Of a stretch of DNA of 17,515 bases, positions 1 to 17,515 are shown in pieces. The position numbers and the translations under genes are program-made. The stretch is taken from positions 1 through 17,515 of the forward strand of contig JBLDXI010000151.1 of assembly GCA_047495785.1 (NCBI GenBank). The letters are read 5' to 3'. Under the pieces are notes generated by a model, which worked only from the letters and a program-made list of their open reading frames with translations, was not told the origin of the DNA and searched no databases. Source of the stretch: Lepidodermella squamata (lineage: Eukaryota; Animalia; Gastrotricha). Position 1 is the stretch's first letter. Each line of letters opens with the position of its first letter.

Positions 1-3000
1 ACCAGCGTTCCGATTGCTAGTAAGTACCTGCCTTAATTTCTGATTTTCAGTTCTTAAATCGCGAATCCCAACAGCTGACCCAACTGGAGATGTAGTATGC
101 CCTGACCCTATTGCGATAGCTAACGGCGAGATTGTTTCGGCAACCTACCCCCTAGCTCAGTCGGCTCGTCCAGGCCAAAACATCACCTACGCCTGCAACA
201 ATGGTTACTCGTTGAGTGCAAGTGGTTTTGTATCTTGTTTGGCCGATGGAACTTGGTCAGTCATCCCTCGATGCATTTCGAACACTGGAGCAACAACTCA
301 GAGCACGCCGAGATGCGGTGTTCTGCCTGCTATCGACAACGGACGAGTGCTGCGAATCAGCGATGATCAAACTCAGGCTATCTATGGTTGCTATGATCGG
401 TACGAAATCGTTGGCGAGGACGTTGTGACATGTAACGGGGGCAGGTGGTCAGCAGTCCCGGCTTGCAGACTTCTCACAGCCACTACCACCATCAGTGGAA
501 GACAGCCATCGGGCGGCGCAACCAGCACTGATTCAGCAATAATAAGTAAGCCCCATCCCTGAGCGTTAGTTCAAACCTTTCGCTTATCTTACTACAGATA
601 CGATTTGCGGACAACTGCCAACGGTTCGTTTTGCGAGGATGGTCTCGTTCAGAGATACAACTCCTAACCAGCAAGGCGGTGAAGTCGCAACTTTTGCTTG
701 CGAGAACAACTTTGTTATGAACGGAATTGAGACAGTCACATGCCAGACACAACCTTTAGGATGGACTCAAATTCCAAAGTGCTCGCCACCCCTCTCGTGT
801 GGCCCTGCTCTCTTCATCTTGAACGCAGAGGTCGTCTATCAAGATTTCAATGGTACAAACAGCAGGGGTGGTTCGACTGTTCAATATCGCTGCTTGGGTT
901 CTTACTCAATCGGAAATTCTGACACCGCTGTTTGCAATGGGCAGACCGGTTCTTGGACCTCGGTTCCATCATGCAACTACCAAACTTGTGGCCAACCGCC
1001 CCAGGTTGTCAACGCTCGTGTTGAATCTCAAACCTTCTCAGGCATCAACAGTGTCGCAGGAGCAACAGTGACCTACAGCTGCCTCAATGGCTTCACGATG
1101 AGTGGCTCTAACACCATAACTTGTGACGCTCAGTCTTTGAGGTGGACTGCTCCCCCGACGTGCGGTGGCACCGCGCCTGCTAATTCTTGCGGGTTACCTC
1201 CCGGTGTTAGGAATGGAGCAATGACAACATCCTCGATTGTTACACGGTCGACTAATGGAGATTTCGTGTTCTATCAATGTGACGAAGGATACACACTGCA
1301 AGGGAACAACTACGTTTCCTGCGTGGATAACAAGTGGTCTACTCCCCCGTCTTGCGTCGGTAAGTCTAAAGATTCTTCCGACTTTTCGATTCTATTGTTG
1401 TATTTTTTAGCATCTTGCGGTAGTACTGGGCCTGTAATTGCAAATGCCGCTATTGTGACCCGAACATTTACCACCCTGGCGAACCCAGGCGACTCCGTTT
1501 CTTACCGATGCATCACCGGATTCTCCTTCGCGCCTGGAAGCTCTACGGCTGTTCAGTGCCTGTCGTCTATGCGATGGTCCACGCCGCTGCCAGTCTGTGT
1601 GTCAAACACTCAGCCATCTCGGCCCACTCAACCATCTGTGACACCTGCGAATGTTCCATCCCCATGCGGCCAGTCTCCATCAATTGCGAATGCGTTTGTC
1701 GCCCAGCGATTCCAAAATGCTGTGCGCTACCAATGCGTCGACGGCTATGTTATCAAAGACTTCGACACAACGGCTTGTCAAAGTGACTACTCTTGGTCTC
1801 CGATTCCAGAATGCATCAGATCTTGTGGGCCTGCTCCGACTGTTTCGAACGCCCGAGTTACGTGGAAGAGCTTCAACAACACATTCAGCCAACCATCCAG
1901 CGTTGTTCGCTATGCTTGTGATAGCGGCCAACCAATTCCAGGTTCAGATTCGATTGTTTGTGGAGATGACGGCAAATGGTCGAACTCCCCGAGCTGTGGT
2001 ACGTTATCATCTGATTAAGTTGTTGTCTTTCTTAAAATAAGTTGTATTCAGTGACCTGCGGCTTGCCTCCAGTTGTATCGAATGCTCGGGTGGATTTCCA
2101 AACTTTCAAAGCTGATGCCAGTGTTCCAGGGTCAACTGCTCGTTACGCTTGTCAGTTGGGCCAGCAAATCAGAGGAACAGACACTGTAATTTGCGGAAGC
2201 GACGGTAAATGGTCTGTAGCTCCGACTTGCTCCCCCAACTCATGCGGACCCCCGCCGAATGTTGCCAACGGCGTAATCCTTTCCAAGTCATTCAGCGGAA
2301 CTAACGGCGGCCCGAATGATCGAGTAATCTACAGTTGTCGCACAGATCTTGGCTACTTTGTCTTGAAGGGCAATGCTAGTGTTTCTTGCGACTTCGAAAG
2401 GCTTCAGTGGTCCGTCGCTCCGACTTGCGATGGCGATATCAGATCTTGCGGACCTGTGCCTACCGTTCAGAATGGATTTGTAGCCGCTTCATCGGTCCCA
2501 ACTGGGGGTCTATCGAATGGAGACGATTTCATCTTCTACAGCTGTAACGCTGGCTTCGTTCTCAACGGGAAAGATCTGGTTGAATGCAAAAACAGCAAAT
2601 GGACCGCCCAACCAACGTGCATCGGTACGTTTGTGTAATGTGCAAAGTACAGGAGGGGAGGGCGTGGTTTAAGGGGGGTTGAGGGGGTACGAGGGGGGTA
2701 AGGGGGGTACCTCAAGAGGTCCGGGCAAGAAAACCCAAAAAACCACCTTTGGCCAGAATAAGGGGCTGAAAATACCGACCCTTTTTTTTTTTTTTTTTAA
2801 ATACTTATTTTTTTAAATACTTATTTTATTTGGTTTCAGGCCGCGATTTTTTACGTCCATAGACATATACAATCGCAAGATTATGTTTTTAGTCGAATTG
2901 TGTGGTTCCTTTAAGTGGCCTCTCATAAAAATGTGTGGGTGTTATAAAACGTTGTAAAAGAAAAATGGAACGGAATGAGTGGAAGTAATATTTACGAATC

Positions 3001-6000
3001 GTGATAAATAGAAAGGAAGAGGAGAGATTGCGATTCGGTTTAGTTCAGGTATACGCATCTCCAAGTATTTGTGCATGTTAACATTAATATTGCTATTCAA
3101 TTTTTATCTTTCGAGTCGTCACTTTCTTTTTGATGATCTCACCCTACCTCACCAAGCCCGAGGACAACTGGTCACCCCGACCCTTACCCCCACCTCCAGG
3201 ATCCTTCTCCATCCACTGGTTTTGTGTTCAAAAGTTTCAGAAAATTGGATTTTCTGAACTTTTGACAAACCTGTGGCTCGAGAAGGTCCTGGAGTTCCAA
3301 ATGCTGTTGTTACCAAGCGATCCTTCAAAAACTACGCAGTTGTTGGAGATACCGTAGAATATACTTGCATGTCCGGTTATATGATGAGCTCTGATAGCAA
3401 ACCAGTTATCACCTGTTTGAACTCTTGGCGATGGACCCAACTTCCGCTTTGCATCGCTCCGCCAGTTGTCGCTACAACCACCACTGTCGCAGTCCCAATA
3501 AATCAACGGTCGAAGTGTGGCCCAGCTCCTCGAATCGATAACGGCTCGATCACCCGCCAAACATTATCAAATAACATGACAATCTTCTTGGACTCAACTG
3601 AATACGCATGTAACGCTAATTATCGAATGTTGGGACTGAATATAATTTTCTGCCAAAACAACAACCAATGGTCATCTCCACCTCAATGCGTTGCATTGAA
3701 CGTGCCAGGTCGAACCACGACCAAGTCACCATTTTGCCCTAGCCCGACTATCGCAATAAGCAATGGCCGTTTGTTGAGTCAGAACTTTGAGTCGGTCGCG
3801 ACTAATGACAGTGTGCTGACTTACAAATGCAATCGAGGTTACGTGTTATCAGGCCCAACTCGAGTGACATGTTCTAGCACCGGCGATTGGTCTACTTTAC
3901 CGACTTGCATACCTGATCAAAGGAGTGACGTGCCTGTCATGTGCGAATTTCCGCCTTCGATTCGATTTGGCCGTATCGATCAAACTAACCTCGGCACGTC
4001 AGGTCAGTTCGAACTTGGCGATTACGTGATATACGCCTGCAATTCTGGCTATGAGCTCGTTGGAGCTGGCAGGGTCTGGTGTGAGGGTAGCGTTGATGCT
4101 GTAGCTTGGACCTCCCCGCCAACTTGCCGCGCTAAGCCTAACTCGCCCGATACCGTTCCAAGTGGGTACTGCGGGAAACCTCCAGATGTCTCCTACAGCA
4201 ACAAAGTCAGATCCGAGTTCAAAAACAGCGATCTCGGCGTGAATATGGCTATGCCTGGTGATAAGGTTTACTATCAATGCTTGGATGGCTATGTCATGGT
4301 TGATACTGATAATAATGGCGTGGCTGAGTGTTCAGCTGGACCTCCAGTAGCTTGGAGAAATGTTCCGAAATGCTCGGATAAAACTTGCGGACCGGCCCCA
4401 GCTATAGCAAATGGGCGAATGGTATCGTCTGTTTTCAAGAGCGGAAATTCACGCTTTGGAGGACCAGGAGATACTCTTTATTGTAAGTTAAAATTTATTT
4501 TTGAGAAAATTCATAACGAAGAAACATTTTCATCTTTAAAATTGAGGTTCCAGCTTCCAGCGTTTCTCGATAAAGCGTGTCCCATAAGTAGCCCAAACAA
4601 AGAATTCGCAGAAACGGGATCAGAAACTTTGAGAGTCGAAGTCACATCTCATGGCTAGGAAAATCTAGAAGAATTGAAAAAATTCGAAATTCAAAAATCA
4701 TGAGAATATTAATCGAGTATAACACTTGTCAATTGGATTAAAAAATCGAAGAAATTTGATAAATCACAGAAAAATTACCGAACCAGTTACCATCGGGGTT
4801 TTTCGGGATATTTCGGGTTCTTTCGGTACATTTTTAATTTCTTCGGTATAATCCCGTTTAAAGAATGGAAGATCCTCCCTGTAGGTTTAAATGTTGAAAA
4901 AAATATTTAAATTTTCTAGAACAAGTTGCGCAAATAAAAAAATGGATGGAATAAATTGTGGGACATGCTGTAAATTTCCATTTGTTTTTTTTATTTTTTC
5001 CCTATTTATGAAAATTTAGTTCTGGAACCCTTAACTTAGGGTGACCAATTGGCACACCCAGTAAATATTTTTTTGATAGTTTTCAATTTTTTTCAAATTT
5101 CGTAACATTTTCCTGATCTATTTAACTTTCGTTTTTTTCATTGCAGATTCTTGCGATACCGGTTACGCTTTGGTTGGCCCTGAGACGGTGACATGCTCGG
5201 GTGACGAAACATCCCGTACTTGGAGCGTGATGCCAAGTTGCTCCCGAAGCACAAACAACGCCGCAAATGACAACAACGACGTCGGAAATCGGATGAACAT
5301 CGACGCTCAGCCAGTAATAGTCGTCAAGCCAACCTCAACCACACCGAAAACCACCCCGGCCACAACCCAAAAAGTTATAAACCAGCCCCCGCGCGAGCTG
5401 CCACTCGCAGCCCCAATCGAACAGCTGAACCTAGATCAGGACTCATCTTGCGGCCCGATTCAGCCCGTTGCTAACGCCTTGCTAGTGACCCAAATTTCGT
5501 CGAGTCTCGATAAATACCCGATCGGAACTATTTTACAGTACCAATGCAACTCCGGGTATCAATTCGATGTAACCTCGATTGATACGGTAATTTGCACCCC
5601 GGATGGCTGGTCGAAATTACCGATTTGCGCCAGATCGATCCAGGCCATTAACTTCGCCCCATGCCGACCCCCGCCGAGTATCGAAAACGGCTTCATCGCC
5701 TCGGTCAACGCGACTTCAGTCATTTACCTATGCAAATTAGGCTTCGCATTGACTGATCCGAGAATCAACGCCGTTACCTGCCAAAAACCAGCCGGAACCT
5801 GGACCTTAGCCCCGACTTGCATCCCGGCGGGATGTGGCGCTGCGCCTAATTTGAGAAACGCGAAATTAACCGTGAAAACTTTCGACGCGACCAGTATCCC
5901 CGATGACAAGGCCTTTTACCAATGCGAACCAGGTTTCCAGGTCCAGGACGCGGCTTATGTTGTCATAACTTGCCAGGCTAACGGCAGTTGGTCTCAAACC

Positions 6001-9000
6001 GCGAATTGCGAGCCGCTAGACGGAATTCAAGCCTCAGCCGCTGGTGGTATCGGCTCGAATAAGGTGGATTCATGCGGGGCGACGCCGACCATCGACAACG
6101 GCCGGGTTATCTACACCCAATACATCACTGGGACGCCGTCAAACGGCGGTCTGGGTGATACCGTGTTTTTCATGTGTAACGACGGTTATCAAATGAACGG
6201 CGATCGGCAGGTTGTTTGCTCGTCCAGCCCTCTGAAATGGTCGGCGATTCCTACATGTACCCGTTCGTCGTCATGCTCGGTACTACCCGTGGTAACTAAC
6301 GGGTTCATCTCAACGCAAACCGCGATGAATTCCGTGCCGAAATTGGGTGATACAATCACGTTTCAATGCGCTGAATCGTGGCGGATTGAAGGGTCCCCAG
6401 TTGTGACGTGTGGCGCGTCTGGCTGGTCGCTGGCTCCGCGCTGTGTGCGGTCAAGCGTGTCGACATGCGGCGCCGCGCCTCAAATCGACAACGGCCAGGC
6501 GCTTTATTCAGATTTTTCGAATGCCAAGTCGGTTGTTGGTTCGCGAGTTTTCTTCCGGTGTAATGAAGGCTTTGTCGTGAATACCGTGCCTTCGACGGCG
6601 GTTTGCCAGGACACGGGCCGCTGGTCGACTCTGCCGAGGTGTTTGAAAGCGTCGGATATTCCGCAGTCTCTGTGCCTGGCACCGCCGTCTGTTGCGAATT
6701 CGGCTGTTATTTACAAAAGTTACGATACAACACCGGTTGGCGGCAGTTTGGTCATGTATGAATGCTTGGAAGGCTACTTGTTGACTACGCGAAATAACTA
6801 CGTTCAGGTTAGTGGAATTTTTCATCATTGGCATCATTGCCATAGACGAAGTTAATATTAATCAAAATTGATTGAGTAATTTATTTGATTTATTTGATTC
6901 TTACGCTCAAGATTTGAAATAAGAGTGGAAAGATAATAATTAAAAGCGTCGCGCATTGTTTAATTAGGGCACTCCTTTCTGTTTTGCGCGACGTTTTGAT
7001 TTTATGTGCGCGATTTTCCAATATTTTGCGCGACGCCTGTCTATGACCCGTTTTATATGAGAAATCGCACTTGAATTGTATTTGAAATTTGAAATAAAAA
7101 TAAAAGTAAAAAAATGAAAAAGAAAAAATCATGTCAGAAGTGGGGTTCGAACCCACGCCCTCTTTCGAGGACCAGATCTTGAGTCTGGCGCCTTAGACCG
7201 CTCGGCCATCCTGACTTGTTCTCCCACCATTGCGATAAGAGAGGTTACTTCCTAACGCCAAGCTATTCTTTCCCAGTTATCATTCTCAAGAAATGCCTTC
7301 CCAATGATTCATCATTTAAACTTTAAAATGAGTAAATTTGCTTGAGAAAGCTAGAATTTTAGCCACATAATTTTTTGAATTATTATTATTTGAGACATTT
7401 TTAACTGAATGGACAGGCATTTCCTCTCAATAACAACAAAAAAAATAATTAAAAATTGAAAATAATATGTTGCCTTCATTCAGACTCTCAAATCCGTTCA
7501 ATGGATTAGCCAACAAAAAAATCAAATATTGCCCATTTTTTCTTAGTGTGCGGCTGATGGGACATGGACAGACCCTCCGAAGTGCGAAGTTCGCAAGTCC
7601 TGTGGCGCCGTTCCCACAATTCCAAACGGCAAAGTCAGCGGCAAGACATTTTCCGCTGATACCGGCACATTGGACGACCGCGTGTTCTACACATGCGACA
7701 GCGGCTTCACCCTAGCAAATGGCATTTCTTTCATCAAATGCGACGGAACTAACTGGTCGCCTTTGCCAGCATGTGTCAAACAATGTAAGACTGAATTACT
7801 TGATTTTTTTCAGTAATAGTTTTTGGATTTTTGTTCAATTTATTTTCTCAACATTCTTCACATCTGAAATAATCAAATTTTTACGAGAATTATCCGATTT
7901 TAAAATAATTTAATTTTTTTCAATATTCGAATTTCGCAACACTTGTTGATTGTTTTTATAATTAAAGCTGCTTCTTGTGGCGATTTACCCACCGTCGAAA
8001 ATGCCCGAGTTGTTTTCAAGAGTCAGCGAGATGCAAACGCTTTAGAAGGCGACGTTGTTTGGCTGAGTTGCCTGGCCGGCTACCAAGTTCAGGGTCGAGA
8101 AGTCGTGACCTGCCAATCAAATTCCTCGTGGTCACCAATGCCTAGTTGCGTACCAGGTAAAACCACATTTTTTCGCGAAAATTTGTAGCCACCTAAATAT
8201 TTTTGTATCAGCATCAGGCGCGAGCTGCAACCCGCCTGCTGACGTTGAAAATGCTGTGATTTACTCGAAATCTTATCAGGACAATGCTAAGCCTGTCGCT
8301 GGTGATTTTGTGCGATACCGATGCAATACCGGGTTCTCGGCGACCACTGCAACGGATGATTCAACGTGCACGGCGTCCGGCACATGGACCCTGCCGCCGC
8401 AGTGCCGCGCGACCGGAACTGTTACCGGTTGCGGGCTGGCGCCGAAAGTTGAAAATTCGCGAGTGACATTTACGACAATTTTAGGCAACTCACAGGCGCT
8501 TACGAATGACATTGTGTGGTACGAGTGTCTTAACGGGTTTGATATCGAAGGCTCGAATGCGGTTCGTTGCTTAGCAACGGGAAGTTGGACTCCGGCGCCG
8601 AGATGCAAATACACACTGAGTAAGTGAGGCTAAACATTAAAGTTGAAAAACTAAAAATTAAAATATTAAAAAATTATAAAAAATTAAAATTTTCCATTTT
8701 AAATTTTAAAAATTGGAAAGAATGTTGAAATTGATTAAAAATTCAAGAAATAAAATATAAATTAATTTTATTGAATTTTAATATTAAATTGGCTATAATT
8801 CTTAAAATGAGAATTCTTGAAAAAAAATTAAATATGTTTTCAGCCGATACGTGTGGTGCGCCTCCTCCTGTGAACAAAGGCTTCATCAGTCAGCCGTATC
8901 GTGGCCCTAGTGTTGCCGGCAGCCAAGTGACCTACGCATGTTCAACCGGGTTCAAATTGCTAGGAAACCCTCAAGTCACGTGCTTGGAAAATGGGAAATG

Positions 9001-9865
9001 GTCTTCATTACCGAGATGCGAATCAATCTCCTCTCGTAAATTTTATCTCCCCTTTGGCCATTGTTTTTTCATTATTTTTTAATGTTTTTAGAGGTGTCAT
9101 GTGGCGCAGTTCCTGATGTTGAAAACGGCAAGGCGATCGAGTCAAATTTTGTCGGAAATGCTAGCGATGTGACGAGTTACGTTATCTACGCCCTGTAACA
9201 GCGGTTTCGTTCTCAAAGGAACCACTCGCATCGAGTGCCTTGGCTCCGGCGGTTGGACAGCTCCCCCGCGTTGCGAAGCCCGGCCTACCACAGGCCCAAC
9301 TTGTGGACCAGTCCCTGTCGTAGCTAACGCCGTTGCTGTTGTCAATACAGTCCCGACTAATTCAAATTTCAGCATACCCGGCGATCTTGTTTGGTACCAG
9401 TGCTTGGAGGGCTATCAGCTGACCAGCTACCCGGCTATTCAATGCTTTGCGAAAGGCTGGTCTGGCCAGCCGTTGTGCAGCCCTATCAGTAATAATTCTT
9501 GTTTTCCTCAAATTATTGCCTTAACATATTTTTTCTCAGAGCGTTTCCGATGTTCGCCAACCATGAGTTTGATTTTCGCCCTTGACCTACAAGAGTCGGA
9601 TGGTTTCACAAGAGCCGAGATGCAAAGCGTGTTGAATTTCTTGAAATCAGTCCCGGCCAACTACCGAAAATTGACCGATGCGAAGGGCGCTGCAACGCCG
9701 GATACAACGTCGTTTTCGGCGGGTGCAGTCACCCTGGCTGGCATGGTAGCATCTCGGACTTACGTTTCGAAAGCTGTGACTGTTACCGATCAAAGCAACG
9801 GCAATGTTGGACCGCTTTCGGAATGGAATGACTGGATGGATACAAATGTTGCTGAATTCAAAAAC
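1..9865 (+). CDS. Multi-Sushi/CCP + C-terminal VWA protein, + strand copy (5'-partial; lacks last exon; damaged at 3248-3285 and ~9191)
   Basis: Exons (window numbering) <1-19, 75-545, 598-1359, 1411-1998, 2052-2624, 3268-4482, 5147-6807, 7547-7784, 7968-8156, 8212-8619, 8844-9035, 9092-9488, 9540-9865. Introns are GT..AG with consistent phases, except the acceptor at 3267, which is intact only in the mirror copy. I count 32 repeats of C..P..NG/NA..Y.C..GY/F..C..W...P.C. Confidence 0.88.
75..545 (+). CDS. Exon 2: CCP1-2
   Basis: acag| acceptor at 74 (alternative in-frame ttttcag at 50); donor gtaagc at 546; CPDPIAIANG..IPRC and CGVLPAIDNG..VPAC. Confidence 0.8.
598..1359 (+). CDS. Exon 3: CCP3-6
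   Basis: tacag| acceptor at 597; gtaagt donor at 1360. Confidence 0.85.
1411..1998 (+). CDS. Exon 4: CCP7-9
   Basis: ttttag| acceptor at 1410; gtacgt donor at 1999. Confidence 0.85.
2052..2624 (+). CDS. Exon 5: CCP10-12
   Basis: ttcag| acceptor at 2051; gtacgt donor at 2625. Confidence 0.85.
2652..2708 (+). other. G-tract cluster, potential G-quadruplex in intron 5
   Basis: Six runs of 3-6 G separated by short loops. Confidence 0.5.
2782..2826. repeat. Poly-T(17) overlapping a 16-bp tandem duplication
   Basis: ttttaaatacttattt x2 (2795-2810, 2811-2826). Confidence 0.8.
3268..4482 (+). CDS. Exon 6: CCP13-17 and first half of CCP18 (5' end scrambled in this copy)
   Basis: Start inferred from the mirror copy (tttttcag|ct tct tgt ggc at 17411); donor gtaagt at 4483. 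Confidence 0.8.
4573..4970. mobile_element. Putative decayed Tc1/mariner-type MITE in intron 6
   Basis: TA|AAGCGTGTCCCATAAGT ... AATTGTGGGACATGCTG|TA; imperfect terminal inverted repeats (12/14 core match), TA flanks, no coding capacity. Confidence 0.45.
5147..6807 (+). CDS. Exon 7: end of CCP18, Thr/Pro-rich linker, CCP19-24, first part of CCP25
   Basis: ttgcag| acceptor at 5146; gttagt donor at 6808; matches the 561-aa ORF. Confidence 0.88.
7123..7128 (-). terminator. Pol III T6 terminator of tRNA-Leu (left arm)
   Basis: AAAAAA on the + strand; mirror of 13551-13556. Confidence 0.75.
7132..7215 (-). tRNA. trnL-CAA: tRNA-Leu(CAA), intronless, antisense within intron 7 of the + copy
   Basis: GTCAGGATGGCCGAGCGGTCTAAGGCG CCAGA CTCAAGA TCTGG, long variable arm, GTGGGTTCGAACCCCAC TTCTGACA; A and B boxes present; no encoded CCA. 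Confidence 0.96.
7547..7784 (+). CDS. Exon 8: end of CCP25, CCP26 (frame not shown in the ORF track)
   Basis: cttag|tgt gcg gct gat ggg aca tgg (CAADGTW) ... CGAVPTIPNG..LPAC; donor gtaaga at 7785. Confidence 0.85.
7968..8156 (+). CDS. Exon 9: CCP27
   Basis: aaag| acceptor at 7967; gtaaaa donor at 8157. Confidence 0.8.
8212..8619 (+). CDS. Exon 10: CCP28-29
   Basis: atcag| acceptor at 8211; gtaagt donor at 8620. Confidence 0.82.
8844..9035 (+). CDS. Exon 11: CCP30
   Basis: ttttcag| acceptor at 8843; gtaaat donor at 9036. Confidence 0.85.
9092..9488 (+). CDS. Exon 12: CCP31-32 (+1 C frameshift at ~9191-9193 in this copy)
   Basis: tacgccctgt here versus tacgcctgt (Y-A-C) in the mirror copy; ttttag| acceptor at 9091; gtaata donor at 9489. 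Confidence 0.8.
9540..9865 (+). CDS. Exon 13: N-terminal half of VWA domain
   Basis: CSPTMSLIFALDLQES..F..EMQSVLNFLKSV resembles VWA beta-A/alpha-1; donor gtaaaa at 9866. Confidence 0.75.
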
Positions 9866-10148
9866 GTAAAAATATTTGATCATTTTTCGAAAGAAAATCG
9901 GAAAAAATAATGCCTCAATATTCGGCATTTTCGCTTAATTTCGAAAAAAATTGAGACTGTTGGGCGGTTAAAAAATCCTTGAAATTTACTTTTAAATTTT
10001 GAGCGAAAAATTAGGCTCACCTGAGATCACCTTGAAAAAATGGAGCTCATATAATCTACACATTATAACTGGTTTAGGAATTAATGATAGGTAATTATGT
10101 TCATTTTCTATTTCTATTCCAGTCAGAACTTTCTAGAAAATTGCTAAT

Positions 10149-10511
10149 CTATTTAGGTCCACAGAAATAGTTCTGAAACGCGGCGTCTGATGAAAGAGCG
10201 TCGACGGTCATTTGCTTCGCCGTTGGAAAATAGCGGAAATATGATATATCCGATGCCACCTGTTGCCTGAGCGCGGTTTGCTGCGTTGTTGCGGCTATTG
10301 CGTCTCCGACTGCGAACACGAATATCCGGCCGCCCATCAGCTGTAATGCTGTAGCTTCGCCCTGGGCTTCGACTAGGGACGTTCCGCGACGTGTGTTGGT
10401 TAGATAAACGATTCTGAGGCTAGTGTTGTAGTCTTTCGCTTCGATTGGCAGAACTGGGACGACATTAGTTCGAATTGTCTGGAGCAATTTTGCCAAATCG
10501 TCATTCAAAGC
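10149..10511 (-). CDS. Terminal exon 14: C-terminal half of VWA domain; single copy, in the palindrome spacer
   Basis: ttttttacag|gct ttg aat; phase 0 matches exon 13; RIVYLTN, EATALQLMGGRIFVFAVG, LRQQVAS; terminal Cys, then TAG. Confidence 0.85.
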   Translation of the reverse strand, partial: ALNDDLAKLLQTIRTNVVPVLPIEAKDYNTSLRIVYLTNTRRGTSLVEAQGEATALQLMGGRIFVFAVGDAIAATTQQTALRQQVASDISYFRYFPTAKQMTVDALSSDAAFQNYFCGPK

Positions 10512-13500
10512 CTGTAAAAAACAGGCAATAAATTTAGCAATTTTCTAGAAAGTTCTGACTGGAATAGAAATAGAAAATGAACATAATTACCTATCATTAA
10601 TTCCTAAACCAGTTATAATGTGTAGATTATATGAGCTCCATTTTTTCAAGGTGATCTCAGGTGAGCCTAATTTTTCGCTCAAAATTTAAAAGTAAATTTC
10701 AAGGATTTTTTAACCGCCCAACAGTCTCAATTTTTTTCGAAATTAAGCGAAAATGCCGAATATTGAGGCATTATTTTTTCCGATTTTCTTTCGAAAAATG
10801 ATCAAATATTTTTACGTTTTTGAATTCAGCAACATTTGTATCCATCCAGTCATTCCATTCCGAAAGCGGTCCAACATTGCCGTTGCTTTGATCGGTAACA
10901 GTCACAGCTTTCGAAACGTAAGTCCGAGATGCTACCATGCCAGCCAGGGTGACTGCACCCGCCGAAAACGACGTTGTATCCGGCGTTGCAGCGCCCTTCG
11001 CATCGGTCAATTTTCGGTAGTTGGCCGGGACTGATTTCAAGAAATTCAACACGCTTTGCATCTCGGCTCTTGTGAAACCATCCGACTCTTGTAGGTCAAG
11101 GGCGAAAATCAAACTCATGGTTGGCGAACATCGGAAACGCTCTGAGAAAAAATATGTTAAGGCAATAATTTGAGGAAAACAAGAATTATTACTGATAGGG
11201 CTGCACAACGGCTGGCCAGACCAGCCTTTCGCAAAGCATTGAATAGCCGGGTAGCTGGTCAGCTGATAGCCCTCCAAGCACTGGTACCAAACAAGATCGC
11301 CGGGTATGCTGAAATTTGAATTAGTCGGGACTGTATTGACAACAGCAACGGCGTTAGCTACGACAGGGACTGGTCCACAAGTTGGGCCTGTGGTAGGCCG
11401 GGCTTCGCAACGCGGGGGAGCTGTCCAACCGCCGGAGCCAAGGCACTCGATGCGAGTGGTTCCTTTGAGAACGAAACCGCTGTTACAGGCGTAGATAACG
11501 TAACTCGTCACATCGCTAGCATTTCCGACAAAATTTGACTCGATCGCCTTGCCGTTTTCAACATCAGGAACTGCGCCACATGACACCTCTAAAAACATTA
11601 AAAAATAATGAAAAAACAATGGCCAAAGGGGAGATAAAATTTACGAGAGGAGATTGATTCGCATCTCGGTAATGAAGACCATTTCCCATTTTCCAAGCAC
11701 GTGACTTGAGGGTTTCCTAGCAATTTGAACCCGGTTGAACATGCGTAGGTCACTTGGCTGCCGGCAACACTAGGGCCACGATACGGCTGACTGATGAAGC
11801 CTTTGTTCACAGGAGGAGGCGCACCACACGTATCGGCTGAAAACATATTTAATTTTTTTTCAAGAATTCTCATTTTAAGAATTATAGCCAATTTAATATT
11901 AAAATTCAATAAAATTAATTTATATTTTATTTCTTGAATTTTTAATCAATTTCAACATTCTTTCCAATTTTTAAAATTTAAAATGGAAAATTTTAATTTT
12001 TTATAATTTTTTAATATTTTAATTTTTAGTTTTTCAACTTTAATGTTTAGCCTCACTTACTCAGTGTGTATTTGCATCTCGGCGCCGGAGTCCAACTTCC
12101 CGTTGCTAAGCAACGAACCGCATTCGAGCCTTCGATATCAAACCCGTTAAGACACTCGTACCACACAATGTCATTCGTAAGCGCCTGTGAGTTGCCTAAA
12201 ATTGTCGTAAATGTCACTCGCGAATTTTCAACTTTCGGCGCCAGCCCGCAACCGGTAACAGTTCCGGTCGCGCGGCACTGCGGCGGCAGGGTCCATGTGC
12301 CGGACGCCGTGCACGTTGAATCATCCGTTGCAGTGGTCGCCGAGAACCCGGTATTGCATCGGTATCGCACAAAATCACCAGCGACAGGCTTAGCATTGTC
12401 CTGATAAGATTTCGAGTAAATCACAGCATTTTCAACGTCAGCAGGCGGGTTGCAGCTCGCGCCTGATGCTGATACAAAAATATTTAGGTGGCTACAAATT
12501 TTCGCGAAAAATGTGGTTTTACCTGGTACGCAACTAGGCATTGGTGACCACGAGGAATTTGATTGGCAGGTCACGACTTCTCGACCCTGAACTTGGTAGC
12601 CGGCCAGGCAACTCAGCCAAACAACGTCGCCTTCTAAAGCGTTTGCATCTCGCTGACTCTTGAAAACAACTCGGGCATTTTCGACGGTGGGTAAATCGCC
12701 ACAAGAAGCAGCTTTAATTATAAAAACAATCAACAAGTGTTGCGAAATTCGAATATTGAAAAAAATTAAATTATTTTAAAATCGGATAATTCTCGTAAAA
12801 ATTTGATTATTTCAGATGTGAAGAATGTTGAGAAAATAAATTGAACAAAAATCCAAAAACTATTACTGAAAAAAATCAAGTAATTCAGTCTTACATTGTT
12901 TGACACATGCTGGCAAAGGCGACCAGTTAGTTCCGTCGCATTTGATGAAAGAAATGCCATTTGCTAGGGTGAAGCCGCTGTCGCATGTGTAGAACACGCG
13001 GTCGTCCAATGTGCCGGTATCAGCGGAAAATGTCTTGCCGCTGACTTTGCCGTTTGGAATTGTGGGAACGGCGCCACAGGACTTGCGAACTTCGCACTTC
13101 GGAGGGTCTGTCCATGTCCCATCAGCCGCACACTAAGAAAAAATGGGCAATATTTGATTTTTTTGTTGGCTAATCCATTGAACGGATTTGAGAGTCTGAA
13201 TGAAGGCAACATATTATTTTCAATTTTTAATTATTTTTTTTGTTGTTATTGAGAGGAAATGCCTGTCCATTCAGTTAAAAATGTCTCAAATAATAATAAT
13301 TCAAAAAATTATGTGGCTAAAATTCTAGCTTTCTCAAGCAAATTTACTCATTTTAAAGTTTAAATGATGAATCATTGGGAAGGCATTTCTTGAGAATGAT
13401 AACTGGGAAAGAATAGCTTGGCGTTAGGAAGTAACCTCTCTTATCGCAATGGTGGGAGAACAAGTCAGGATGGCCGAGCGGTCTAAGGCGCCAGACTCAA

Positions 13501-16500
13501 GATCTGGTCCTCGAAAGAGGGCGTGGGTTCGAACCCCACTTCTGACATGATTTTTTCTTTTTCATTTTTTTACTTTTATTTTTATTTCAAATTTCAAATA
13601 CAATTCAAGTGCGATTTCTCATATAAAACGGGTCATAGACAGGCGTCGCGCAAAATATTGGAAAATCGCGCACATAAAATCAAAACGTCGCGCAAAACAG
13701 AAAGGAGTGCCCTAATTAAACAATGCGCGACGCTTTTAATTATTATCTTTCCACTCTTATTTCAAATCTTGAGCGTAAGAATCAAATAAATCAAATAAAT
13801 TACTCAATCAATTTTGATTAATATTAACTTCGTCTATGGCAATGATGCCAATGATGAAAAATTCCACTAACCTGAACGTAGTTATTTCGCGTAGTCAACA
13901 AGTAGCCTTCCAAGCATTCATACATGACCAAACTGCCGCCAACCGGTGTTGTATCGTAACTTTTGTAAATAACAGCCGAATTCGCAACAGACGGCGGTGC
14001 CAGGCACAGAGACTGCGGAATATCCGACGCTTTCAAACACCTCGGCAGAGTCGACCAGCGGCCCGTGTCCTGGCAAACCGCCGTCGAAGGCACGGTATTC
14101 ACGACAAAGCCTTCATTACACCGGAAGAAAACTCGCGAACCAACAACCGACTTGGCATTCGAAAAATCTGAATAAAGCGCCTGGCCGTTGTCGATTTGAG
14201 GCGCGGCGCCGCATGTCGACACGCTTGACCGCACACAGCGCGGAGCCAGCGACCAGCCAGACGCGCCACACGTCACAACTGGGGACCCTTCAATCCGCCA
14301 CGATTCAGCGCATTGAAACGTGATTGTATCACCCAATTTCGGCACGGAATTCATCGCGGTTTGCGTTGAGATGAACCCGTTAGTTACCACGGGTAGTACC
14401 GAGCATGACGACGAACGGGTACATGTAGGAATCGCCGACCATTTCAGAGGGCTGGACGAGCAAACAACCTGCCGATCGCCGTTCATTTGATAACCGTCGT
14501 TACACATGAAAAACACGGTATCACCCAGACCGCCGTTTGACGGCGTCCCAGTGATGTATTGGGTGTAGATAACCCGGCCGTTGTCGATGGTCGGCGTCGC
14601 CCCGCATGAATCCACCTTATTCGAGCCGATACCACCAGCGGCTGAGGCTTGAATTCCGTCTAGCGGCTCGCAATTCGCGGTTTGAGACCAACTGCCGTTA
14701 GCCTGGCAAGTTATGACAACATAAGCCGCGTCCTGGACCTGGAAACCTGGTTCGCATTGGTAAAAGGCCTTGTCATCGGGGATACTGGTCGCGTCGAAAG
14801 TTTTCACGGTTAATTTCGCGTTTCTCAAATTAGGCGCAGCGCCACATCCCGCCGGGATGCAAGTCGGGGCTAAGGTCCAGGTTCCGGCTGGTTTTTGGCA
14901 GGTAACGGCGTTGATTCTCGGATCAGTCAATGCGAAGCCTAATTTGCATAGGTAAATGACTGAAGTCGCGTTGACCGAGGCGATGAAGCCGTTTTCGATA
15001 CTCGGCGGGGGTCGGCATGGGGCGAAGTTAATGGCCTGGATCGATCTGGCGCAAATCGGTAATTTCGACCAGCCATCCGGGGTGCAAATTACCGTATCAA
15101 TCGAGGTTACATCGAATTGATACCCGGAGTTGCATTGGTACTGTAAAATAGTTCCGATCGGGTATTTATCGAGACTCGACGAAATTTGGGTCACTAGCAA
15201 GGCGTTAGCAACGGGCTGAATCGGGCCGCAAGATGAGTCCTGATCTAGGTTCAGCTGTTCGATTGGGGCTGCGAGTGGCAGCTCGCGCGGGGGCTGGTTT
15301 ATAACTTTTTGGGTTGTGGCCGGGGTGGTTTTCGGTGTGGTTGAGGTTGGCTTGACGACTATTACTGGCTGAGCGTCGATGTTCATCCGATTTCCGACGT
15401 CGTTGTTGTCATTTGCGGCGTTGTTTGTGCTTCGGGAGCAACTTGGCATCACGCTCCAAGTACGGGATGTTTCGTCACCCGAGCATGTCACCGTCTCAGG
15501 GCCAACCAAAGCGTAACCGGTATCGCAAGAATCTGCAATGAAAAAAACGAAAGTTAAATAGATCAGGAAAATGTTACGAAATTTGAAAAAAATTGAAAAC
15601 TATCAAAAAAATATTTACTGGGTGTGCCAATTGGTCACCCTAAGTTAAGGGTTCCAGAACTAAATTTTCATAAATAGGGAAAAAATAAAAAAAACAAATG
15701 GAAATTTACAGCATGTCCCACAATTTATTCCATCCATTTTTTTATTTGCGCAACTTGTTCTAGAAAATTTAAATATTTTTTTCAACATTTAAACCTACAG
15801 GGAGGATCTTCCATTCTTTAAACGGGATTATACCGAAGAAATTAAAAATGTACCGAAAGAACCCGAAATATCCCGAAAAACCCCGATGGTAACTGGTTCG
15901 GTAATTTTTCTGTGATTTATCAAATTTCTTCGATTTTTTAATCCAATTGACAAGTGTTATACTCGATTAATATTCTCATGATTTTTGAATTTCGAATTTT
16001 TTCAATTCTTCTAGATTTTCCTAGCCATGAGATGTGACTTCGACTCTCAAAGTTTCTGATCCCGTTTCTGCGAATTCTTTGTTTGGGCTACTTATGGGAC
16101 ACGCTTTATCGAGAAACGCTGGAAGCTGGAACCTCAATTTTAAAGATGAAAATGTTTCTTCGTTATGAATTTTCTCAAAAATAAATTTTAACTTACAATA
16201 AAGAGTATCTCCTGGTCCTCCAAAGCGTGAATTTCCGCTCTTGAAAACAGACGATACCATTCGCCCATTTGCTATAGCTGGGGCCGGTCCGCAAGTTTTA
16301 TCCGAGCATTTCGGAACATTTCTCCAAGCTACTGGAGGTCCAGCTGAACACTCAGCCACGCCATTATTATCAGTATCAACCATGACATAGCCATCCAAGC
16401 ATTGATAGTAAACCTTATCACCAGGCATAGCCATATTCACGCCGAGATCGCTGTTTTTGAACTCGGATCTGACTTTGTTGCTGTAGGAGACATCTGGAGG

Positions 16501-17411
16501 TTTCCCGCAGTACCCACTTGGAACGGTATCGGGCGAGTTAGGCTTAGCGCGGCAAGTTGGCGGGGAGGTCCAAGCTACAGCATCAACGCTACCCTCACAC
16601 CAGACCCTGCCAGCTCCAACGAGCTCATAGCCAGAATTGCAGGCGTATATCACGTAATCGCCAAGTTCGAACTGACCTGACGTGCCGAGGTTAGTTTGAT
16701 CGATACGGCCAAATCGAATCGAAGGCGGAAATTCGCACATGACAGGCACGTCACTCCTTTGATCAGGTATGCAAGTCGGTAAAGTAGACCAATCGCCGGT
16801 GCTAGAACATGTCACTCGAGTTGGGCCTGATAACACGTAACCTCGATTGCATTTGTAAGTCAGCACACTGTCATTAGTCGCGACCGACTCAAAGTTCTGA
16901 CTCAACAAACGGCCATTGCTTATTGCGATAGTCGGGCTAGGGCAAAATGGTGACTTGGTCGTGGTTCGACCTGGCACGTTCAATGCAACGCATTGAGGTG
17001 GAGATGACCATTGGTTGTTGTTTTGGCAGAAAATTATATTCAGTCCCAACATTCGATAATTAGCGTTACATGCGTATTCAGTTGAGTCCAAGAAGATTGT
17101 CATGTTATTTGATAATGTTTGGCGGGTGATCGAGCCGTTATCGATTCGAGGAGCTGGGCCACACTTCGACCGTTGATTTATTGGGACTGCGACAGTGGTG
17201 GTTGTAGCGACAACTGGCGGAGCGATGCAAAGCGGAAGTTGGGTCCATCGCCAAGAGTTCAAACAGGTGATAACTGGTTTGCTATCAGAGCTCATCATAT
17301 AACCGGACATGCAAGTATATTCTACGGTATCTCCAACAACTGCGTAGTTTTTGAAGGATCGCTTGGTAACAACAGCATTTGGAACTCCAGGACCATTCGA
17401 GCCACAAGAAG
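10149..17411 (-). CDS. Multi-Sushi/CCP + C-terminal VWA protein, - strand copy with intact 3' end (continues beyond window)
   Basis: Exons 17411-16197, 15532-13872, 13132-12895, 12711-12523, 12468-12061, 11836-11645, 11588-11193, 11141-10816, 10511-10149. Frame is open through all GT-AG junctions to TAG at 10151-10149. Encodes CCP13-32 plus VWA. Confidence 0.9.
10816..11141 (-). CDS. Mirror exon 13 (VWA N-half)
   Basis: Reverse complement of 9540-9865. Confidence 0.78.
11193..11588 (-). CDS. Mirror exon 12 (CCP31-32, intact frame)
   Basis: Within ORF 10771-11619. Confidence 0.85.
11645..11836 (-). CDS. Mirror exon 11 (CCP30)
   Basis: Reverse complement of 8844-9035. Confidence 0.85.
12061..12468 (-). 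CDS. Mirror exon 10 (CCP28-29)
   Basis: Reverse complement of 8212-8619. Confidence 0.82.
12523..12711 (-). CDS. Mirror exon 9 (CCP27)
   Basis: Reverse complement of 7968-8156. Confidence 0.8.
12895..13132 (-). CDS. Mirror exon 8 (end of CCP25, CCP26)
   Basis: Reverse complement of 7547-7784. Confidence 0.85.
13464..13547 (+). tRNA. trnL-CAA: tRNA-Leu(CAA), mirror copy
   Basis: Identical to 7132-7215; 84 nt. Confidence 0.96.
13551..13556 (+). terminator. Pol III T6 terminator of tRNA-Leu
   Basis: TTTTTT starting 3 nt after the discriminator base. Confidence 0.75.
13872..15532 (-). CDS. Mirror exon 7 (CCP18-25)
   Basis: Identical 561-aa ORF translation. Confidence 0.88.
15709..16106. mobile_element. 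Mirror copy of the putative MITE
   Basis: Reverse complement of 4573-4970. Confidence 0.45.
16197..17411 (-). CDS. Mirror exon 6 (CCP13-18) with intact acceptor
   Basis: atttttcag|CT TCT TGT GGC TCG AAT GGT CCT = (A)SCGSNGP. Confidence 0.88.
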
Positions 17412-17515
17412 CTGAAAAATCATTAAACTTTCAATTTTCTGAAACTTTTGAACACAAAACCAGTGGATGGAGAAGGATCCTGGAGGTGGGGGTAAGGGTC
17501 GGGGTGACCAGTTGT

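Follow-up and report, generated by a model that had tools for sequence, protein, structure and literature searches.

The stretch of Lepidodermella squamata DNA that we analyzed (17,515 nt; the window) is the entire contig C151 of a 121.23-Mb animal assembly consisting of 151 contigs. Its architecture, and the recurrence of this architecture in other small contigs, lead us to conclude with a probability of about 0.93 that C151 is an in-vitro fold-back (inverted) amplification chimera and does not represent chromosomal sequence. An artefact had already been favored in the original prediction, and this preference is now backed by a contig that consists solely of the fold-back, by an unfolded copy of the same locus on contig C3, by a 9-nt microhomology and a 386-nt turn at the junction, and by eight sibling fold-backs.

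Architecture and gene content of the palindromic contig

An inverted-repeat search of the window revealed blocks with 100% complementarity at positions 3164-3247/17432-17515, 3285-8172/12507-17394, 8169-9192/11488-12511, and 9192-10147/10534-11489. As predicted, they form a giant near-perfect palindrome (3164-17515) with arms of about 7 kb, in which a left arm (3164-10147, plus strand) and a right arm (10534-17515, minus strand) mirror each other around a 386-nt spacer, or loop (10148-10533). The left arm carries a Sushi-repeat gene that is cut before its last exon; in the right arm, the gene lies on the minus strand and stops at the contig end. Segment 1-3163 (plus strand), which contains Sushi-repeat exons of the same gene and is part of a longer arm, is left without a mirror image by the end of the contig at position 17515. 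For the same reason, position 3164 is the outer limit of the visible arm only, and the true outer arm end is not in view.

A full global alignment of the two arms (6984 nt for the left and 6982 nt for the right arm) yielded three differences, a 37-nt patch at 3248-3284 and two 1-nt homopolymer indels, exactly the kinds of differences that had been announced from the first reading; substitutions outside the patch were absent across about 6.9 kb of arm. The indels affect a T-run at position 8168 (T6 versus T5) and a C-run at position 9191 (three versus two C bases). Within the patch, where the left arm (plus strand) differs from positions 17395-17431 of the right arm, comparison of both arms and C3 in a three-way alignment demonstrates that the left-arm version has lost the intron acceptor 'ttttcag' and has lengthened the exon by one base, causing a frameshift. 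The right-arm version resembles C3 and has kept the splice site. The left-arm patch resembles an imprecise copy, in inverted orientation, of about 25 nt located just upstream, such as a small local template switch might leave behind. The combination of zero substitutions with a patch that breaks both the splice site and the reading frame fits an unselected in-vitro error. Since the patch would be expected in both arms if one had been copied directly from the other, it requires a second error event.

The two tail-to-tail gene copies of the original prediction are indeed present, but they are unequal: both lack the 5' end, with both contig ends falling within the gene or arm, and just one possesses the last exon. 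This last coding exon (10149-10508, minus strand; stop codon TAG at 10149-10151) resides in the spacer, which is ordinary genomic sequence, and it continues the right-arm copy only; the left-arm copy is without it. Pfam searches identified seven Sushi repeats in the open reading frame at 639-2018 and further Sushi domains in the left arm. When searched singly against Pfam at E-values up to 10, the C-terminal exons at 9404-9910 and the spacer exon returned nothing usable; by eye, the domain in the two C-terminal exons resembles a von Willebrand A domain, which we regard as a candidate assignment. Each arm also contains a tRNA-Leu(CAA), as the claim of a shared tRNA had it: ARAGORN placed the intronic left-arm copy at 7132-7215 (minus strand) and the right-arm copy at 13464-13547 (plus strand), and a single copy is present at the C3 locus. 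The MITE that had been proposed for the arms could not be substantiated, as a search of the arm for an element bounded by terminal inverted repeats found AT-rich chance matches only.

The fold-back junction and its unfolded counterpart

BLAST searches against the assembly contigs located the same locus in an unfolded state on the 4.56-Mb contig C3 with 91-96% identity. C151 corresponds to C3 3087942-3078324 in reverse, followed by C3 3077932-3085140. Positions 1-3163 of C151 are collinear with C3 3087942-3085201 in reverse (95.7% identity), the left arm is the reverse of C3 3085140-3078324, and the spacer is collinear with C3 3077932-3078323. No inverted repeats longer than 75 nt exist in C3 3066000-3095999, i.e., the 30 kb around the locus, and the sequence distal to the fold is present on C3, which represents the primary haplotype. 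C151 diverges from C3 by 4-9%, and a DNA search of the assembly's own contigs found the C151 haplotype nowhere else. A contig derived from the non-primary haplotype resembles a diverged 'paralogue' (91-96%) and not an exact duplicate; we rejected a genuinely paralogous origin given that a third near-identical copy is absent from the assembly.

At the inner end of the arm, the fold-back junction is marked by the 9-nt microhomology AATTGCTAA (10139-10147). When the junction was aligned to the two breakpoints on C3, AATTGCTAA was also seen immediately upstream of the spacer sequence there, and the two BLAST blocks to C3 (5135-10153 and 10139-15544) overlap at this point. The turn-back distance is 386 nt. 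C151 consequently displays the traits by which chimeras of multiple displacement amplification (MDA) are recognized: opposite-strand segments of the same locus, a short turn-back (<10 kb, most often a few hundred nucleotides), an overlap within 2-21 nt, and a normal, unfolded locus elsewhere.

Microhomology and a short spacer also characterize the junctions of in-vivo fold-back inversions, which leave an identical signature, so these features do not discriminate between an artefact and a chromosomal event. They would suit a very recent germline inverted duplication of the fold-back inversion or breakage-fusion-bridge (BFB) type on the second haplotype of this heterozygous animal, produced by an in-vivo snap-back at the 9-nt inverted repeat after a break. 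It also speaks for such a duplication that C151 is 4-9% away from C3 and that its haplotype occurs nowhere else in the assembly, so that an exact-haplotype unfolded copy is not seen. We nevertheless consider this reading very improbable. Because the contig ends inside the arm, the duplication has no supporting chromosomal flank; a large conserved gene is left truncated, and the frame-breaking patch sits in one of the arms. Eight other small contigs are built alike, for five of which the unfolded counterparts are 100% identical, and many independent giant palindromes, all on read-length contigs, are not a credible germline state.

Recurrence in small contigs and the source of the fold-backs

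Near-perfect fold-backs were present in nine of the ten adequately tested contigs of up to 25 kb, C151 included; the sibling contigs were tested partly through DNA searches against their own genome. The arms of the eight siblings (C149, C148, C147, C146, C145, C143, C142, and C120) are 99-100% identical. Where measured, their spacers amount to 260, 265, about 637, 748, and 995 nt, and junction overlaps of 9-15 nt were found by alignment in the four siblings measured for this trait (C149, C148, C147, and C145). For each of the eight, a large contig holds the counterpart in an unfolded state, with 100% identity for five of them (on C19, C55, C54, C33, and C32) and 94-99% identity for the other three (on C13, C20, and C15). 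In C150, C144, and C140, a fold-back center was not found within the first 10 kb. With nine of ten small contigs folded, the fold-backs are not the rare, locus-specific events known from in-vivo fold-back inversion or BFB. One could still envision that they are real somatic or germline palindromes, which would arise in the living animal, a microscopic and largely parthenogenetic one, wherever strands snap back at short inverted repeats across its genome, and which would be abundant enough to assemble. C151 would then be one of them from the second haplotype. We assign a very low probability to this scenario.

The published L. squamata assembly was generated by MDA, HiFi sequencing, and hifiasm, and comprises 122.83 Mb in 157 contigs with a GC content of 43.3%, a raw N50 contig of 2,937,808 nt, and a heterozygosity of 2.99% (PMC11660948). 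In the assembly studied here, the sampled GC content is about 0.44-0.45 and contig C2 has a length of 2,937,651 nt; the two assemblies are six contigs and 1.6 Mb apart, and C2 differs from the published N50 by 157 nt. Going by these summary statistics, they are probably, though not provably, the same MDA-based assembly, in which case its HiFi reads are those of BioProject PRJNA1063365. HiFi reads of L. squamata averaged 13.4 kb and MDA fragments were about 24 kb long (PMC11660948); the 17,515 nt of C151 approximate one long read or one MDA fragment. An Alvis screen of the published assembly reported zero chimeric contigs in this species (PMC11660948), which is a counterpoint to an artefact.

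More than 85% of MDA chimeras are inverted, with priming overlaps of 2-21 nt (Lasken and Stockwell, 2007, PMC1855051); their distances peak at 250-300 nt within a range of 0-5000 nt, with overlaps of 5-13 nt (Lu et al., 2023, review, PMC9984789). Palindromes occur in about 12-46% of the reads of MDA libraries (Pacasus, PMC6218980), or in about one third (PMC13265396), and in roughly 0.5% in control libraries. Fold-back reads are known from unamplified PacBio libraries too (PMC6218980) and from ligation-based nanopore libraries (PMC13141652). These reports, and a library identity that is only probable, would allow for an origin in a step other than MDA, such as a missed SMRTbell adapter, the fill-in of single-stranded ends that snap back while the library is prepared, template-complement read-through in nanopore sequencing, or a repeat join by the assembler. 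We judge such an origin to be extremely improbable. A missed adapter or a template-complement read would let the arms meet at the fragment end without any genomic spacer, and both were rejected because a genomic spacer is present, not only in C151 but in at least five siblings as well (260-995 nt); overlaps of 9-15 nt characterize the junctions of C151 and four siblings. A join made by the assembler would require an inverted repeat at the junction, where merely 9 nt are shared. Moreover, fold-backs make up nearly all of the small contigs, which the palindrome rates of MDA libraries fit better than those of the controls.

For the in-vitro chimera that we favor, we infer that the template switch occurred in the tube, during MDA by phi29. 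In the course of whole-genome amplification, a growing strand would have copied the locus of the Sushi-repeat gene from the second (non-primary) haplotype. The 3' end of this strand would then have detached, found a new annealing site on the complementary strand at a distance of 386 nt through the 9 nt of AATTGCTAA, and been extended back across the sequence just copied, giving rise to an arm, a 386-nt loop, and a second arm. If the chimera itself was amplified, several accurate long reads would carry it, and the assembler may have kept these reads as a small separate contig without merging them with the normal C3 locus. Errors made by the polymerase or in the consensus of one arm would account for the 37-nt patch and both homopolymer indels.

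Consequences for the assembly and comparison with known palindromes

The duplicated tail-to-tail gene is accordingly almost certainly no feature of the animal's genome and carries no biological weight as such. At least nine fold-back chimera contigs in this assembly create false inverted duplications and false extra gene copies, and those that stem from the other haplotype create false diverged 'paralogues'. If the assembly is that of the published first gastrotrich genome, the chimera screen in that paper reported none (PMC11660948). The small fold-back contigs should therefore be dropped or split before gene families are counted, structural variants are called, or palindromes are interpreted.

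Among known systems, the conversion-homogenized palindromes P1-P8 of the primate Y chromosome share with C151 kilobase-sized arms of more than 99.9% identity, a unique spacer, and genes inside the arms. Unlike C151, natural palindromes of this type are bordered by unique sequence on either side, hold intact genes, and reside on long contigs; the right arm of C151 runs to the contig end, and its left gene copy lacks the last exon and bears the splice and frame lesion. In the bdelloid rotifer Adineta vaga, palindromes in the first assembly were reportedly put down to assembly error later on (Flot et al., 2013; Simion et al., 2021). They are likewise gene-bearing, come from the assembly of a microscopic animal, and are easily over-read as unusual genome biology, but there allelic copies had been joined on one scaffold, whereas C151 is a read-sized contig with identical arms from one haplotype. 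In-vivo fold-back inversions and BFB amplification resemble C151 in that they produce inverted duplications with a short unique spacer that turn at a microhomology. These are, however, locus-specific, entail distal loss and copy-number gain, and are joined to a chromosome, whereas here at least nine small contigs that are unrelated share the structure, and the locus is unfolded on a chromosome-scale contig.

The inverted chimeras made by phi29 in MDA differ from C151 in that our chimera forms a contig of its own within a polished primary assembly, for which amplification of the library is presumed. They match it in their opposite-strand segments of one locus, a turn of a few hundred nucleotides, a short overlap, an intramolecular origin, and near-identical arms (Lasken and Stockwell, 2007, PMC1855051; PMC9984789; PMC6218980), and inverted duplications turn up in assemblies of amplified DNA.

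Arms, spacer and gene content of the palindrome

An own-genome search established that the window is the entire contig C151 (17,515 nt) of a eukaryotic assembly comprising 121,234,032 nt in 151 contigs; the sequence is not human and belongs to a compact animal genome with a sampled GC content of about 0.44-0.45 and short, AT-rich introns. An inverted-repeat search of the window resolved the two arms (3164-10147 and 10534-17515) into four adjoining inverted blocks with 100% complementarity in each, and a spacer of 386 nt (10148-10533) between the arms. Aligned globally base by base, the arms (6984 and 6982 nt) differ in three places in all: a patch (3248-3284 versus 17395-17431), one indel in a T-run at 8168, and one indel in a C-run at 9191. 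Since this full alignment contains no substitution outside the patch over about 6.9 kb of arm, the list of arm differences in the original prediction proved complete; the MITE that it placed in the arms was not confirmed by our search. The end of the right arm at 17515 is set solely by the end of the contig. Position 3164 is therefore no biological boundary, and bases 1-3163 represent the partnerless part of a longer arm.

The arms contain long open exons rich in Sushi/CCP repeats (Pfam PF00084, E-values down to 1e-48, searched exon by exon without a joined gene model), and we predict that they belong to a giant Sushi-repeat protein gene, positioned on the plus strand in the left arm. The last coding exon (119 codons, minus strand, TAG at 10149-10151) is located within the spacer and continues only the right-arm gene copy. 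Two tail-to-tail gene copies had been proposed; two copies are indeed present in mirror arms, but both are missing the 5' end, located outside the contig, and the left copy also lacks the last exon. The C-terminal exons (9404-9910, plus strand; 10149-10508, minus strand) gave no Pfam matches, even at a permissive threshold; their resemblance by eye to a von Willebrand A domain is unconfirmed. Each arm holds one tRNA-Leu(CAA). The gene at 7132-7215 (minus strand) is intronic in the Sushi-repeat gene and antisense to it, and it is kept in both haplotypes (C3 3081233-3081316).

An unfolded counterpart and a turn-back junction

When compared by BLAST with 30 kb of C3, a contig of 4.56 Mb, C151 corresponds to C3 3087942-3078324 reversed, followed by C3 3077932-3085140. 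The two sequences are 95-96% identical across exon-rich blocks; in mostly intronic stretches, identity falls to about 91% and indels are numerous. We found no inverted repeats longer than 75 nt in the region of the locus on C3, the tRNA-Leu(CAA) is single-copy there, and own-genome searches detected no third copy of the locus in the assembly. Within one intron, C3 (about 3083400-3083700) bears an inserted palindromic element that is MITE-like and has long terminal inverted repeats; C151 lacks it and carries, at the opposite position (4490-5134), about 645 nt of AT-rich intron sequence unrelated to the insertion. At this intron, the two haplotypes differ in a transposon insertion. Since C3 possesses the element and C151 does not, C151 represents a second, diverged haplotype of the locus on C3 and is folded back upon itself.

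The left arm closes with AATTGCTAA (10139-10147), and the junction alignment shows these 9 nt again on C3, directly upstream of the spacer; at this locus, 386 nt are thus bracketed by the two copies of a 9-nt inverted repeat. If a 3' end terminated in one of them, it could pair with the other and would then be extended backward along the just-copied sequence. A single turn-back event of this type accounts for the whole contig. By itself, a simple model in which one arm was copied from the other leaves one detail unexplained, the patch. In its C3-like right-arm version, both the 'ttttcag' intron acceptor and the frame of the next Sushi exon are intact, whereas the left-arm version has lost the acceptor, contains one additional base in the exon, and resembles an imperfect inverted copy of the approximately 25 nt directly upstream. 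We read the patch as a probable second, small template switch or a consensus error in one arm.

Recurrence of fold-backs in small contigs

Among the tests available, recurrence of such inverted arm-spacer-arm structures in other small contigs is the decisive one. Eight sibling contigs are fold-backs with an arm identity of 99-100% and spacers of 260-995 nt where measured. In the first 10 kb of C149, C148, C147, and C145, the arms are 99.9-100% identical and reach the edge of the examined segment, the spacers measure 995, 260, 265, and 748 nt, respectively, and the junction alignments overlap by 9-15 nt; the fold-backs in C146, C142, C120, and C143 emerged from own-genome searches. All eight have a counterpart on a megabase contig, with identities of 100% for C149 (on C19), C147 (C55), C145 (C54), C146 (C33), and C120 (C32), 97-99% for C148 (C13), 96% for C143 (C15), and 94% for C142 (C20). 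In each case, the spacer and one arm align collinearly with the counterpart and the other arm maps to that same position in inverted orientation, so the large contig is unfolded. With C151 included, fold-backs make up nine of the 10 contigs of up to 25 kb that were adequately tested; C150, C144, and C140, covered in their first 10 kb and showing no fold-back center there, are not part of this count.

The sole tested contig without a fold-back, in the part tested, is C135. Its segment 7000-10000 is a 100% duplicate of C2 880275-883270, in a repeat-rich region, and the contig may be redundant in some other way. The start of the 520-kb contig C50 (1-10000 examined) carries a 99.6% inverted repeat (2651-3718 versus 8932-10000) with a 5.2-kb spacer, the repeat running to the edge of the examined segment; either a fold-back read incorporated at the end of the contig or a true inverted repeat could account for it.

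The unfolded C3 locus, the 9-nt junction repeat, and the fold-backs in nine of 10 small contigs bear out the artefact explanation favored in the original prediction; a real, recent inverted duplication carried by the second haplotype is very improbable. The palindrome is present in the sequence, yet it is almost certainly no feature of the organism: with a probability of about 0.93, C151 is a phi29-type inverted chimera that arose from the second haplotype, was itself amplified, and persisted as a separate contig. The eight siblings are best regarded as redundant chimeric contigs.

Probable amplified library and known chimeras

Roberts et al. (PMC11660948) assembled L. squamata from HiFi reads after multiple displacement amplification (MDA; 122,829,359 nt, 157 contigs, GC 43.3%, raw-assembly contig N50 2,937,808 nt) and reported 2.99% heterozygosity with strongly diverged haplotypes. 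Judged by summary statistics only, the present assembly is probably this published one. If so, the library record of amplification is supplied, and both identity classes of the counterparts are explained, with same-haplotype pairs at 100% and pairs from different haplotypes at 94-99%. The Alvis screen in that study reported zero chimeric contigs for L. squamata (PMC11660948); the fold-backs thus seem to have escaped notice.

A fold-back from a different library or assembly step is likewise very improbable. Missed-adapter or template-complement reads were rejected, since they would leave no genomic spacer, unlike the 386 nt in C151. Of the chimeras formed in MDA, more than 85% arise intramolecularly as inverted sequences that lack the segment in between, and in more than 70% priming involved 2-21 complementary nt (PMC1855051). 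The distance spanned by the turn-back ranges over 0-5000 nt with a peak at 250-300 nt, and most overlaps measure 5-13 nt (PMC9984789). Palindromic reads make up 12-46% of long-read libraries of amplified DNA, compared to about 0.5% in controls, and produce inverted duplications in assemblies (PMC6218980). C151 and its siblings agree with all of these published measures for MDA inverted chimeras.
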